DNA of 64,000 nucleotides. It comes from Ruditapes philippinarum (Eukaryota). The position numbers and the translations under genes were made by a program. Location: NCBI RefSeq assembly GCF_026571515.1, contig NW_026860429.1:248001-312000 (forward strand), written 5' to 3'. Each line of letters begins with the position of its first letter. Position 1 is the stretch's first letter. Under the pieces are notes generated by a model. The model ran no database searches, was not told where the DNA came from, and saw only the letters and a program-made list of their open reading frames with translations. Below are positions 30,917-60,286 of this stretch, piece by piece.

Positions 30917-32191
30917 TCATTCAGTTAAAGGCTTTTTTTTCAAACTTAGATCATAACTGCTGGCGACGGAAACAAGCCGATTAACAGGCATGCTTTTACT
31001 ACGTTCGGCACTCGGATTTTTGAAGCATCCGAATGTTTCCTTCACTTGACTACGAAATCGTTGTCCACTGAGGAAATACAAGATGAAATTAATTGCGTGT
31101 TTGGCGTAGGCCAACATATTTACAACCGCCCACATTATTTCCTGTATCTCAGTCATGCCAGTGTCCTCGTCAATCCAGGCCGATATTCCATTCAGGTAAA
31201 TAAGCGCAGGTATTCCCATAAGAACAAATAGTGCGTTAACAAAAAGTATTGACACAGTTATTTGTCTAGCTTGGTCATCAAATGCTGGTTTATTGCCAGA
31301 TGTTTGTCTGTTTGTGTTCGTCATACTCTTCCGCAGCTTTCTGCTTTTTTGTAGACCTTTTATTATAATCAAACCACCAACAAAGAAGATTGTCAGTATG
31401 GTCGTGAAGATGATAGCTAAAAGAATTTGATGCATTCCCGAAAAATATTGTCCATATCCTGGATCGTCATACCAGCATACTTTGATTGTTTTCGTGGCAG
31501 TTAACTTTTCATTTGTTTCAATCTTGACAAACAAATCGTCTATACATTCTTCAGTGGTAGAATTTAAAGCGCTTGCATAATCTTTGAACCTAAATTCACC
31601 GGCAGGATCGATTTTGGTATCAAAATACTGGTCTAGAATAAATTCACATGTATTGGTCGATTTTTCATTTGAATCCAAGGGAAACGAAATAGTTTCAGAT
31701 GTCTCCTTGTATGTTACTTCGTACAACTTCATACCAAAAAACATATGTCCATGAATTACACACGCTGTGAGCGCAAGAGCAATTGAAATGATTACCGCAA
31801 TGTTTACAGTACATATATTCTTTACAAGGTAAGGTTTAGCGGTACATATGGCGCGCTCAATTGTAACAGCTGCCAGCAGGAAGCTGCCGATACTTCCACT
31901 GAAGTAGTTGACGAAGAATTGAAATTTGCACACAAAGTTATTAATATGACGGATATCTATACCAGTGAGATAGATTATCCACCATCGAGGCAACATTATG
32001 ACCATCACAACTATGTCAAAGAGTGCTTTAGCTGACAGGAAAACAGAAGTTGACGACGGCTTGTTTCGTTTGCGTGATAGTACAATCATTGTCATGATGT
32101 TACCAAAAGTTCCAACGGCGAAAATAACCGGGGCTCCAACAATCCAAATCATTCGAGCTATATCTGAACCCTTGCTCTGACTGCTATCCAT
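30917..32191 (-). CDS. Class A GPCR copy 1 (FMRFamide/peptide-receptor-like orphan), 424 aa, single coding exon
   Basis: Seven hydrophobic segments; GN (TM1), D2.50, C3.25, TIERA (E/DRY), FxxxxxP (TM6), INFILY plus helix 8 RFR. Confidence 0.95.
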   Translation of the reverse strand: MDSSQSKGSDIARMIWIVGAPVIFAVGTFGNIMTMIVLSRKRNKPSSTSVFLSAKALFDIVVMVIMLPRWWIIYLTGIDIRHINNFVCKFQFFVNYFSGSIGSFLLAAVTIERAICTAKPYLVKNICTVNIAVIISIALALTACVIHGHMFFGMKLYEVTYKETSETISFPLDSNEKSTNTCEFILDQYFDTKIDPAGEFRFKDYASALNSTTEECIDDLFVKIETNEKLTATKTIKVCWYDDPGYGQYFSGMHQILLAIIFTTILTIFFVGGLIIIKGLQKSRKLRKSMTNTNRQTSGNKPAFDDQARQITVSILFVNALFVLMGIPALIYLNGISAWIDEDTGMTEIQEIMWAVVNMLAYAKHAINFILYFLSGQRFRSQVKETFGCFKNPSAERSKSMPVNRLVSVASSYDLSLKKKPLTE

Positions 32192-32288
32192 CTCTGAAGT
32201 GATGCTAGTATATAAATAATCGTCAGTGCTAGATAGTCACTGTCTTTAATAAGTTAATTCAAGTGACACCGATTCTCAACATTCAACG

Positions 32289-32389
32289 TTTTAAATATCA
32301 ATGTGCACTGCCTTATATGGATAAAACGCGAAAGTACGTAATTTAAGCTGATAGGGGTGTGGTTCTCATTACTCCTTTTACGTTATTGG
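32289..32389 (-). promoter_or_regulatory. GPCR1 proximal promoter: TATA-like 32289-32297, CArG 32311-32320, GC/CACCC box 32354-32362, CCAAT 32385-32389
   Basis: Motif order and spacing are conserved upstream of all five GPCR copies. Confidence 0.6.
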
Positions 32390-57411: not shown

Positions 57412-57940
57412 ATTATGTGTTTTAGATTTTATGGAGTTTGGTTACAGCAAAATGTAGGAAATGCAGACATATTTCTAGAATTAGTAAAGCAAAGATTGAA
57501 AGATAATTTTGTTCAAACCTGGCATGAAAGGATACAAAGTTCACCAAGAGCATTATTTTATAGAAATATTGCAGTTTTCAAGTTTCAAGAATATCTAGAT
57601 CACAATACAGTTAATAAGTTTTGTTTTTCATTAATAAGAGTAAGAGTGTCTTCTTACAGATTGCAAATTGATTCAGGTAGATGGACTTGGCCATTAAGAA
57701 CAAAAATCGATGAAAGAAAATGTACTTTATGTTATATATTAGAAGACGAATATCATTTTATTCTTGAATGTTCATTGTACACTGATTTAAGGAAAATATA
57801 TATACATAAAATATATTGGAAGCATCCAAACATGATTAAATTTGTTAAATTGTTAACAATAGAAAATGTAAAAATTGTAAGGAAACTTGGAATTTATGTA
57901 TTTAAAGCTTTGAAAAGCAAAATTATGTGTTGTATGGTAC
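57412..57940 (+). mobile_element. 5'-truncated LINE ORF2 3' end
   Basis: KQRLKDNFVQTW...RVSSYRLQIDSGRW...CTLCYILEDEYHFILEC is typical of CR1/L2-group C-termini. Confidence 0.88.
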
Positions 57941-59098
57941 TTGTTCTAAAACTACTCGTCGGCTCTGTCTGCGTCGTTATTTCGTTCAACAAAATAAAGA
58001 TATAATTAAGCTTCAAGTCCCAAATATACTTGAATAGAATTTATACAGGAATTCATGCTAGGACTTTTAAAAAAGTCATTTTAGCACGACTTGAGTAAAT
58101 AAGATCAATTAAGTATTTTGTCATTCATTTGCCTAAACATTCTTTTAAAACATGAAAGAGATGTTAAATATGGCAGTGTTTGGATTTAGTTTAAAGTGAT
58201 ATTATGCTCATCCATGGGAAGATATAGAGTGAACAAGTGAAAGTCAAAATCAGTTAACATTTTCTCATAAATCCTTTAAATTTTATAATTTACTTGACAA
58301 GAACGATACATAACTCAATAGGCCCTGTGAAATGTGTGTAATTATCCGTCGAAATTTAGGCTAAGAACACTAAGTTTCACGTTTTGTTGTTGTTGTTGTT
58401 GTAACTATTTAAGTTTCTATATCATAAAGTTTTTGAGTCAATATTGTAGAAAGTTATGTCTGGGCCGGTCAATAACCAATCACCACAAGAATAATTTGTT
58501 TGACAAAAAATAAAGACAAAATTCTTATCTTTGGAATTTAATATAAAAAAGTTACATTACAACAGAAATGCAGAAATTACCTATACAACATACAATTTCG
58601 TGATAACACAATATGATTGTTTATTCTCTTGTTGTATCCAAATAAAATGATCTATAAACATAAAATTATCTATATCTTATACATACAACTCAGATAAGTC
58701 AAATTATAATTTTATACAAAATGATTGTTTATCGGACAATTCACAATATCATATAACATAAAATAATTATACTCAAAAATACTAAAGCTGCGCAAGTTGT
58801 TACAATGCACTTATTAGTGATATTATTTACAGATTATCTTCGTGTAAAATTGGCATTGCAAGAAAGTCAAAAAATTTACAACAGGATTTTGAGCATACAT
58901 TTTTGTAGTTACCAAGGAAATGAAATTTATTTGTTTCCCGTCTATCTCATTTTGGCTTCAAAAAGTGATACAAAGACAAAACGTAGGGTCTAAGCCTAGG
59001 TCACCGGTATAATCATCAATATGACTTTGACACATTTCCCATTTTCCCACGTGCATAAACAAATTGATTTTGTGCAAAATTATCACTGTTTCAGTTCT

Positions 59099-60286
59099 TT
59101 ATTCGTTAAACAGTTGATTTGCATGCGCGGTTTTACTTCTTTCGACGCTCGAATTTTTCTTGTATCCAAATATTTCCAACACTTGACGACGGAACCGGTT
59201 TCCACTGAGGAAATACAAGATAAAATTAATTGCATGTTTCATGTAAACCAACATATTTACGAGCGCCCAGACTATTTCCTGTGTTTCTGTCAATCTGCCA
59301 GTCTCCTCGTCAACCCAAGCTGATCTTCCTATCAGGTAAATAAGTGCGGGTGTTGCCATAACAACAAAGAGTGCATTCACCAAAAGCAATGTGAATGTTA
59401 TTTGTGAAGCTCGATCGTCAAATGCTGGTTGCTTGCTCGATATTCGCGTATATTTGTTCCTCATACTCTTCCGCAACTTTTTGCTTTTTCGTAGACCTTT
59501 TATTATAACTATACCACCAACAAGGAAGATAATCAGTGGTATAAACATGAAGGTGATAGCTGATACAATTTGATGCATTCCCGAAAAATATTGTCCATAT
59601 TCTGGATCATCATACCAGCATACTTTGATTTTATTTATGCCAGTAAACTCTTCATTTGATTCGATCTTGGCAATCAAATCGTCTGTCCACTCCTCAGTGG
59701 TAGAATTTACAGTATCGAAATACTGGTCAAAAATAAATGCACATGTATTGGTCGACCTCTCCTTTGAATCCAGGGGAAACGAAATACTTTCAGATGTTTC
59801 GTTGTATGTTACTTCGTACAGCTTGATGCCAATCAACATGTGTCCATGAATTACACACGATGTAAGGGCAAGAGCAATTGAAATGATTACCGCAATATTT
59901 GCAGTACATATATTCTTTACTATGTAGGGTTTAGCGGTACATAAGGCGCGCTCGATTGTAACAGCTGCCAGCAGAAAGCTGCCGTAACTTCCACTGAAGT
60001 AGTTGCCAAAAAATTGGACTTTGCACACTATGTTATGAATATGACGGACATCGAAACCAACCAGATAGACCAACCACCATCGAGGCAACATAAATATAAT
60101 CACAAATAAATCAGCAAGTGCTTTAGCTGTCAGGAAAACAGTAGTAGACGATGGTTTGTTCCGTTTGCGTGATAGTACAATCATCGTCACAATGTTTCCA
60201 AAAACTCCAACGGCGAAAATAAGTGGTGATCCAACAATCCAAATCATTCGAGCTATATCTGAACCTTTGCTCTGATTGCTATCCAT
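59099..60286 (-). CDS. Class A GPCR copy 5, 395 aa, C-terminus truncated by deletion
   Basis: 7TM intact. Tail ends ANQLFNE* because about 194 bp (stop plus proximal 3'UTR) present in copy 4 is missing. Confidence 0.9.
   Translation of the reverse strand: MDSNQSKGSDIARMIWIVGSPLIFAVGVFGNIVTMIVLSRKRNKPSSTTVFLTAKALADLFVIIFMLPRWWLVYLVGFDVRHIHNIVCKVQFFGNYFSGSYGSFLLAAVTIERALCTAKPYIVKNICTANIAVIISIALALTSCVIHGHMLIGIKLYEVTYNETSESISFPLDSKERSTNTCAFIFDQYFDTVNSTTEEWTDDLIAKIESNEEFTGINKIKVCWYDDPEYGQYFSGMHQIVSAITFMFIPLIIFLVGGIVIIKGLRKSKKLRKSMRNKYTRISSKQPAFDDRASQITFTLLLVNALFVVMATPALIYLIGRSAWVDEETGRLTETQEIVWALVNMLVYMKHAINFILYFLSGNRFRRQVLEIFGYKKNSSVERSKTAHANQLFNE

Follow-up and report, generated by a model that had tools for sequence, protein, structure and literature searches.

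Five tandem class A receptor genes of Ruditapes philippinarum carry lysines at positions 2.46 and 7.45 around a retained D2.50

The stretch of Ruditapes philippinarum DNA analysed here (assembly GCF_026571515.1, contig NW_026860429.1, positions 248,001 to 312,000; 64,000 nucleotides in full, hereafter the window) contains a cluster of genes for G protein-coupled receptors (GPCRs) in which lysines occupy two positions of the sodium pocket around the conserved aspartate D2.50. A survey of open reading frames (ORFs) of at least 150 amino acids overlapping positions 28000-64000 returned six, five of which are GPCR-like and lie on the minus strand. These five, c1 to c5, are arranged in tandem between 30917 and 60286, and all are intact, intronless and 395-424 amino acids long. 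Subfamily A comprises c1 (30917-32191), an intronless class A GPCR gene of 424 amino acids, and c2 (36469-37728; 419 amino acids), which is 97% identical to it. Subfamily B comprises c3 (46254-47468; 404 amino acids counted from the conserved ATG), c4 (52074-53288; 404 amino acids) and c5 (59099-60286; 395 amino acids, with a shorter C-tail), and the identity between the two subfamilies is 72-74%. The mechanically delimited ORF of c3 extends 26 codons further upstream, to a TTG at 47546, while the ATG common to all copies is at 47468. The C-tail of c5 ends in QLFNE, and this copy has one additional arginine in extracellular loop 3 (ECL3).

Self-BLAST revealed tandem segmental duplication units around c3, c4 and c5 (45341-61475); since the flanks as well as the genes are 85-94% identical, the array grew by tandem segmental duplication. 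Three runs of N are present in this region, at 44261-44392 (about 1.9 kb past the c3 stop), 47951-48190 (483 bp upstream of the c3 ATG) and 53705-53866 (417 bp upstream of the c4 ATG). All are intergenic and none touches an ORF, so frame continuity across the gaps is not at issue, although promoter regions and copy number could be affected. Gaps within the span of the cluster raise the question of whether the lysines could be an artefact of assembly, gene prediction or alignment, being either not genomic or not truly at 2.46 and 7.45. The chance of this is negligible, and we rejected this explanation: besides the intergenic position of the gaps, the same residues recur in five separate copies and in an independent database protein (P0001, 98% identical to c1, with the same residue set), ungapped alignments to the CCK-A and mu-opioid receptors fix the numbering, and public reads and contigs cover the ORF.

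All five copies matched the Pfam families 7tm_1 (PF00001; 62.6-92.1 bits against a cut-off of 30.5) and Srw (PF10324, nematode chemoreceptors; 37.5-44.5 bits against a cut-off of 22.2). The best Srw stretch in every copy is the C-terminal part of the profile only (from ~182-191 to 318 of 319), and we read this match as a probable resemblance among peptide-receptor-like families, not as orthology. Generic numbering was fixed using phmmer alignments to the solved CCK-A and mu-opioid receptors, which are ungapped through transmembrane helices (TM) 2, 3, 6 and 7. In TM2 of c1, K55 aligns with L2.46 and D59 with D2.50. G102 of TM3 aligns with S3.39, C88 (3.25) and R113 (3.50) are 25 residues apart, and E112-R113-A114 falls on the D/E-R-Y motif; in TM6, G326 aligns with W6.48 and P328 with P6.50. 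TM7 places K364 on N/S7.45, H365 on 7.46, N368 on N7.49, F369 on P7.50 and Y372 on Y7.53. The landmarks N1.50, D2.50, C3.25, R3.50, P6.50, N7.49 and Y7.53 are present in all five copies, while two class A hallmarks, W6.48 (CWxP) and P7.50 (NPxxY), are replaced by G/A and F, respectively. These two deviations run through the whole family (T6.48 in 125 and F7.50 in 179 of 182 relatives) and therefore mark a divergent subfamily that still counts as class A. The profile matches, the fold and the landmark residues all place c1-c5 in this class.

The fold was modelled for c1 with AlphaFold2 from a 133-row alignment. The model (mean predicted local distance difference test score, pLDDT, 82.1; predicted template modelling score 0.79) has seven TM helices and helix 8, and the blocks containing 2.46-2.50, 3.39, 6.48 and 7.45 reach a pLDDT of 91-97. 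Extracellular loop 2 (ECL2) is modelled as a beta-hairpin containing a disordered insert, and its residues 174-226 have a pLDDT below 50. The Foldseek neighbours of the model are opioid, neurotensin, QRFP and related peptide receptors, the top-ranked opioid-receptor chains having a probability of 1.00 and target-normalised template modelling scores of 0.83-0.87.

The initial annotation had reported that the TM2 motif LAxxD reads KAxxD in all five copies, and direct translation and the phmmer numbering agree with it on this point, including the codon 32027-32029, which is AAA and encodes K55. They likewise agree on G102 as 3.39, on Gly or Ala at 6.48 and on K364 of the TM7 motif as 7.45. The translated c1 motifs are SVFLSAKALFDIVV in TM2 and AYAKHAINFILY in TM7. 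All pocket codons are on the minus strand: in c1, they are K55 (2.46) at 32027-32029, D59 (2.50) at 32015-32017, G102 (3.39) at 31886-31888, G326 (6.48) at 31214-31216 and K364 (7.45) at 31100-31102; in c2, K55 at 37564-37566, D59 at 37552-37554, G102 at 37423-37425, G326 at 36751-36753 and K364 at 36637-36639. The corresponding codons of c3 are K55 at 47304-47306, D59 at 47292-47294, G102 at 47163-47165, A311 (6.48) at 46536-46538 and K349 (7.45) at 46422-46424; those of c4 are K55 at 53124-53126, D59 at 53112-53114, G102 at 52983-52985, A311 at 52356-52358 and K349 at 52242-52244; and those of c5 are K55 at 60122-60124, D59 at 60110-60112, G102 at 59981-59983, A311 at 59354-59356 and K350 (7.45) at 59237-59239. 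K2.46, D2.50, G3.39, K7.45 and N7.49 are thus common to all five copies, with AAA for both lysines and GGC for G3.39 throughout, and 6.48 is encoded by GGA in c1 and c2 and by GCA in c3-c5. Two of the five sequence features of a canonical Na+ site (D2.50 and N7.49) are present and three (S3.39, N7.45 and L2.46) are absent in every copy, which places c1-c5 outside the set of receptors with a canonical Na+ site. By K2.46 and K7.45, they fall instead with receptors such as GPR151, CXCR6, CCR7 and CCR10, in which a basic residue at a pocket position accompanies a retained D2.50.

The Schiff-base lysine that binds retinal in opsins is at position 7.43. An opsin-like role for the TM7 lysine was rejected, as the lysine of c1-c5 is at 7.45, in ungapped register with N7.49 and Y7.53, and 7.43 is a tyrosine. 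Two further differences between the subfamilies lie in TM5 and ECL2. In TM5 of subfamily A (c1 31400-31450; c2 36940-36990), the P5.50 that is near-invariant in the family is lost through a one-residue gap (FTTI-LTIFF in c1 and c2, FMLIPLIIFL in c3-c5, IIPE in the sister genes), and judging by the alignment, this loss is a further core change beyond G6.48. In ECL2 (~31560-31610 in c1 and the matching place in c2), c1 and c2 have a 16-residue insertion relative to c3-c5.

To place these substitutions, relatives were collected from the same genome and from public databases. At E <= 1e-10, the 1.4 Gb R. philippinarum genome contains at least 106 matches to c1, and none but the five window genes are more than 70% identical to it; identity drops to 52-56% in the next group of paralogs, L006-L011, and to 39% in L012. 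NCBI lists a protein with the same sequence as the ORF of L008 under the name 'type-1 angiotensin II receptor-like [Ruditapes philippinarum]'. Among 35 family members that we tabulated (27 own-genome ORFs, including the five window genes, and eight public proteins), the combination of K2.46, G3.39, G/A6.48 and K7.45 occurs only in the window genes; in the seven closest paralogs, 2.46 is L or I and the other three positions are S3.39, T6.48 and N7.45. Sister paralogs L006-L011 share with c1-c5 the family, the intronless ORF, the long ECL2, the ER(T/A) and NFxxY motifs and H7.46, but differ in having kept these pocket residues and in a tighter constraint on their TM and intracellular regions.

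A wider, quicker alignment covered 182 family members besides the window genes: 22 paralogs from the same genome and 160 proteins from public databases, among them the 150 best of 4737 HMMER hits. Position 2.46 was L in 164 of them, I in four, V in three and M in three, with eight gaps, and 7.45 was N in 175 and H in two, the remaining five having other single residues. Thus, 2.46 was never K, R or H in the 174 relatives in which this position is occupied, and 7.45 was neither K nor R in any of the 182; the check on the spread of the K2.46 and K7.45 pair proposed in the initial annotation shows that the pair is not common among these homologs. A word-based search limited to TM2 (residues 44-84) gave two candidates, of which only P0001 had K2.46, a result of little weight. 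In a maximum-likelihood tree, the genes with both lysines (hereafter K/K genes) form one clade with a support of 100/100, which branches in an unresolved fork with other own-genome paralog groups, and the Mercenaria homolog falls outside all of them; the clade is thus nested in a radiation confined to the Ruditapes lineage. Because the K/K genes form a single clade, the Mercenaria homolog lies outside and the relatives lack K and R at these positions, the residue set arose once, on one branch, within the venerid lineage. Comparison with the outgroups indicates that L2.46K, S3.39G, T6.48A/G, N7.45K, F2.45A and T6.47M were derived together on this branch, which bears out the earlier proposal of two introduced lysines accompanied by small residues at 3.39 and 6.48. 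Gene conversion as a source of the shared lysines was rejected, the synonymous divergence (dS) being alike in the N-terminal (0.32-0.44) and C-terminal halves (0.39-0.44). The five genes are a young orphan clade within a large, bivalve-expanded family resembling peptide receptors and Srw chemoreceptors. H7.46 is already present in the sister clade. The family as a whole has F7.50 and no Y5.58, and with this background, together with Thr6.48, models derived from canonical receptors transfer imperfectly.

The changes of the K/K clade are not spread evenly over the receptor. Defining a sister-conserved column as one kept in at least 11 of 12 sister sequences, we obtained 170 such columns, 19 of which differ in all K/K genes; position 2.46, at which ten sisters have L and two I, makes 20. 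Nine of these 20 are at the membrane depth of the pocket: 1.54 (I to M), 2.45 (F to A), 2.46 (L to K), 3.39 (S to G), 6.42 (I to A), 6.43 (V to L), 6.47 (T to M), 6.48 (T to A/G) and 7.45 (N to K). Of the six pocket positions named in the initial annotation, four changed, compared with 16 among 165 other columns (Fisher p = 0.0018, a post hoc value, the positions having been picked after the sequence was seen). Several of the codon paths are long: TTT TTA to GCT AAA at 2.45-2.46 requires four nucleotide changes and TCA/TCG to GGC at 3.39 three, while 6.48 went from ACA through GCA to GGA and 7.45 from AAT to AAA. Leucine cannot become lysine in one nucleotide step, Ile being the intermediate of a two-step path via ATA, and the Ile (ATT) at 2.46 of paralog L009 indicates that Ile is tolerated there. 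The clade as a whole is not accelerated, its nonsynonymous divergence (dN) to the outgroup being 0.57-0.58 compared with 0.54-0.59 in the sisters. On the alignment, the pattern appears size-compensating: Asn7.45 gave way to the larger Lys, while its contact partner 6.48 and the facing 3.39 shrank.

What such substitutions do in receptors of known function can be drawn from the literature. The Na+ pocket is formed by 2x50, 3x39, 7x45 and 7x49 and collapses on activation as TM7 nears TM3, and 6x48:7x45 is a conserved contact pair (PMC6954041). Leu2.46 is ~90% conserved across class A GPCRs (bioRxiv 10.1101/587576); it lies one turn from D2.50 and, along with 3x43 and 6x40, closes the pocket off towards the cytosolic cavity (PMC9290982; bioRxiv 10.1101/587576). 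In A2AR, L48(2x46)R and N284(7x49)K were interpreted as forming a salt bridge with D2.50 and fixing the inactive packing, and N280(7x45)R abolishes agonist potency (PMC6954041). Replacement of L75(2x46) of beta2AR by K, R or H left the receptor well expressed with strongly lowered recruitment (bioRxiv 10.1101/2025.05.30.656974), and in D2R, S121K(3.39) acts as a Na+ mimic that stabilises the receptor in its inactive state (PMC7755896). The background assumed in the initial annotation holds for the 2x50/3x39/7x45/7x49 pocket (PMC6954041) and for Na+ mimicry by S3.39K (PMC7755896). At 6.48, the earlier residue of this family was Thr and not Trp.

Natural basic residues in the pocket have also been described. 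One is K3.39 of GPR151: the cryo-EM structure of this receptor shows the lysine at a distance of 3.0 A from D2.50, in a position that overlaps the Na+ site and keeps Na+ out (PMC13167728). In chemokine receptors, H7.45 is a family hallmark, R7.45 of CXCR6, CCR7 and CCR10 is said to permit a salt bridge with D2.50, and most homeostatic members have G3.39 (PMC6037435). Natural K2.46, alone or with K7.45, was not found in the literature searched, subscription journals being mostly outside its coverage; the matches listed for K2.46, K7.45 and R7.45 concern other subjects, and the single 'Lys2.46' is a slip for Leu2.46. Thus, single natural basic residues in the pocket (K3.39, R7.45) are already on record, while K2.46 and the pair of K2.46 and K7.45 are so far unique to the genes reported here.

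Another important question is whether these genes are maintained. Pairwise dN/dS was estimated with the Nei-Gojobori method and complemented by regional dN/dS and relative-rate comparisons. The ratio was 0.10 for c1-c2, 0.34-0.46 within subfamily B and 0.35-0.41 between the subfamilies, where dS is ~0.4; it was below 1 in all six pairs tested (range 0.10-0.46; Fisher p between 0.025 and 3e-12). None of the five K/K ORFs is interrupted, whereas two pseudogene fragments of the sister type were found elsewhere in the genome. These fragments, L021 (G000:C8643) and L016 (G000:C12945, adjoining L009), have both stops and frame breaks and are of the S3.39 type.

Transcription was assessed by comparing four runs with positions 29500-34500, ~4% of run X21 and ~6% of run X23 being sampled. 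In X21, which is true RNA-seq, the depth was 1-5 per strand over 30836-31837 and at most 0.6 over the flank 30001-30668. The X21 reads placed on c1 show the base of c2 at 11 of 20 listed variant places within 30794-31997, so most of these reads come from c2. X23 gave no reads over the c1 ORF in the sampled ~6% of the run. X1 and X2 are sets of contigs that are only presumed to derive from RNA; apart from the repeats at the ends of the stretch, they contributed short pieces of low depth within 30968-32221. Hardly any reads reach the K55 codon. Very deep cover with many loose ends at 29500-29533 and 33170-33370 in all four runs represents high-copy repeats and not a gene transcript. From this, we conclude that there is low-level transcription of c2 at least, and possibly also of c1, the comparison covering the c1/c2 region only. 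The initial annotation had named untranscribed genes with dN/dS near 1 as one outcome that would overturn its reading; what was found is dN/dS of 0.10-0.46 and some transcripts in one run.

Taken together, these data show that the mid-membrane Na+/water pocket was rebuilt on the stem of the clade: D2.50 and N7.49 were kept, L2.46K, S3.39G, T6.48A (later G in c1 and c2) and N7.45K were introduced, and the neighbours F2.45 and T6.47 changed alongside to A and M. They further suggest, with a probability that we put at roughly 0.55, that the rebuilt pocket works around the two lysines, with a tethered charge replacing Na+ at D2.50 and the sizes of neighbouring residues compensated. By analogy with the receptors described above, the ammonium group of K7.45 would take the place of Na+ as the counter-charge of D2.50, and K2.46, one helical turn below D2.50, may act as a second counter-charge. 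Smaller residues at 3.39 and 6.48 would make room for the long lysine side chains, and K2.46 would stand in for the leucine of the hydrophobic gate (2.46/3.43/6.40), which normally separates the pocket from the cytosol. Receptors built in this way would be expected to work independently of external Na+ and to rely on an internal salt bridge to keep their resting state; their basal activity should be low and the barrier to activation high or altered, as with the single basic substitutions in A2A, beta2 and D2.

Several observations weigh against this interpretation. Regional dN/dS between subfamilies A and B is flat (TM 0.375, intracellular 0.40, extracellular 0.38), while the sister pairs have 0.16, 0.18 and 0.32, respectively; judged by these ratios, the constraint on TM and intracellular regions appears about twofold more relaxed in the K/K clade than in the sisters. 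An excess of dN/dS is well known for young duplicates, and the raised TM and intracellular values could reflect either true relaxation or this excess. All ten lysine codons are AAA, which makes synonymous turnover uninformative at them. Retention of the pocket residues in both subfamilies, from which the initial annotation had argued for selection as opposed to decay, appears no stronger than that of the average residue and is unremarkable because the subfamilies are 72-74% identical; what stands of that argument is that the genes, with intact ORFs and the low ratios given above, are not decaying. The RNA evidence comes from one run at low depth, is mostly of c2 type and includes nothing over the ORF in X23. 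Two lysines face a single aspartate and the core has gained no acidic residue, which requires one lysine or both to be uncharged, to pair with an anion or to point away, perhaps into the cytosolic cavity. Finally, with H7.46 in the sisters and a family without W6.48, P7.50 and Y5.58, the earlier pocket may have been no canonical Na+ site at all.

The first of these points would fit relaxed constraint in redundant young duplicates, in which tolerated or mildly disabling accidents became fixed in one ancestor, the lysines serve no purpose of their own and the genes are on the way to being lost. With a single ancestor of all copies, the shared lysines count as one event, and the near-uniform ratio of ~0.38 across regions, the average retention, the low expression and the fact that the same substitutions singly disable model receptors all fit such a history. 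Nevertheless, all five ORFs have remained intact after a dS of ~0.4, dN/dS is below 1 in every pair and as low as 0.10 in c1/c2, and six neighbouring core positions changed in a size-compensating manner, several of them via multi-step codon paths. Moreover, nothing similar is present in the 182 relatives, and the duplicates were kept and expanded after the change. We consider such a history unlikely.

The charge imbalance bears on two other explanations. One is a deepened ligand pocket, in which the small residues at 6.48 and 3.39 leave the orthosteric site open at its base and the lysines bind chloride or an anionic group (carboxylate, sulfate or phosphate) of the ligand. The net charge of +1 in the core with no new acid, and the removal by T6.48A/G and S3.39G of bulk between the orthosteric site and D2.50, are consistent with it, and inverse agonists of three receptors are known to reach into the Na+ pocket (cited in PMC6954041). 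However, D2.50 retained beside the lysines favours an internal salt bridge, and we regard this explanation as rather improbable. The other is an intramembrane pH sensor, in which a buried lysine or H7.46 titrates near physiological pH and shifts the balance between active and inactive states. K2.46, K7.45 and H7.46 do cluster around D2.50 with unbalanced charge, and in other class A receptors, proton sensing depends on networks of buried titratable residues (PMC12187918; bioRxiv 10.64898/2026.05.26.727808); the known proton sensors, however, rely on buried acids and histidines and not on lysines, and we regard a sensor of this kind as very unlikely.

Within the reading that the pocket was rebuilt around the lysines, a bolder version can be formulated: a still-signalling, 'sodium-free' class A design in which two tethered ammonium groups replace both Na+ and the Leu2.46 gate, movement or deprotonation of a buried lysine gates activation and the core senses pH, an anion or membrane voltage. 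This version is speculative, and the odds are well against it; if true, its setting would be an intertidal clam whose body fluids follow changes in salinity.

Among described systems, c1-c5 would work most like GPR151 and the chemokine receptors with R7.45, an analogy of function that implies no kinship. Like the clam genes, GPR151 has a natural lysine in a class A Na+ pocket with D2.50 retained. It differs in having a single lysine, on TM3 (3.39), where the clam genes have Gly and carry their lysines at 2.46 and 7.45; it also belongs to an unrelated lineage, keeps W6.48 and has VCF in place of DRY, while the clam genes have ERA. The salt bridge of GPR151 is seen in a cryo-EM structure, whereas that of the clam receptors is a predicted one. 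The chemokine receptors concerned likewise form a group defined by Na+-site mutations, with a natural basic residue at 7.45 and frequent Gly3.39 (PMC6037435). Their 7.45 residue, however, is Arg and not Lys, they are vertebrate receptors with known ligands, and 2.46 is not mentioned in the text of PMC6037435. Engineered A2AR, beta2AR and D2R mutants have basic residues at the same positions and are expressed, folded and, as interpreted by their authors, held inactive. They are single laboratory changes in canonical receptors with loss of activation, in contrast to the clam genes, in which two natural basic residues are combined with cavity-making changes under purifying selection.

Two further ORFs of the window remain to be mentioned. 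Between c4 and c5, a 245-amino-acid ORF on the plus strand (57268-58005) gave no Pfam match; part of this region, 57641-58402, is 93.6% identical to 50367-51130 of the neighbouring unit, and the ORF may be a mobile-element remnant carried along in the duplication. A Ser/Pro-rich ORF at 4812-5645, also with no Pfam match, is unrelated to the receptor cluster.

The finding concerns one species lineage and an orphan family. In this lineage, a natural clade carries both the 2.46 and 7.45 lysines together with D2.50 and the cavity-making changes at 3.39 and 6.48, and five intact copies have been maintained, while single basic residues at 2.46 or 7.45 in A2A and beta2 impair or abolish activation with the protein still expressed. 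With canonical sisters in the same genome, this amounts to a natural experiment on the parts that the Na+ pocket and the hydrophobic gate play in basal activity and in the barrier to activation, and the same contrast bears on whether compensation for a tethered cation is possible. Should the receptors signal, they would represent a route to Na+-independent class A receptors; if they do not, they would be an example of maintained non-canonical or decoy receptors.

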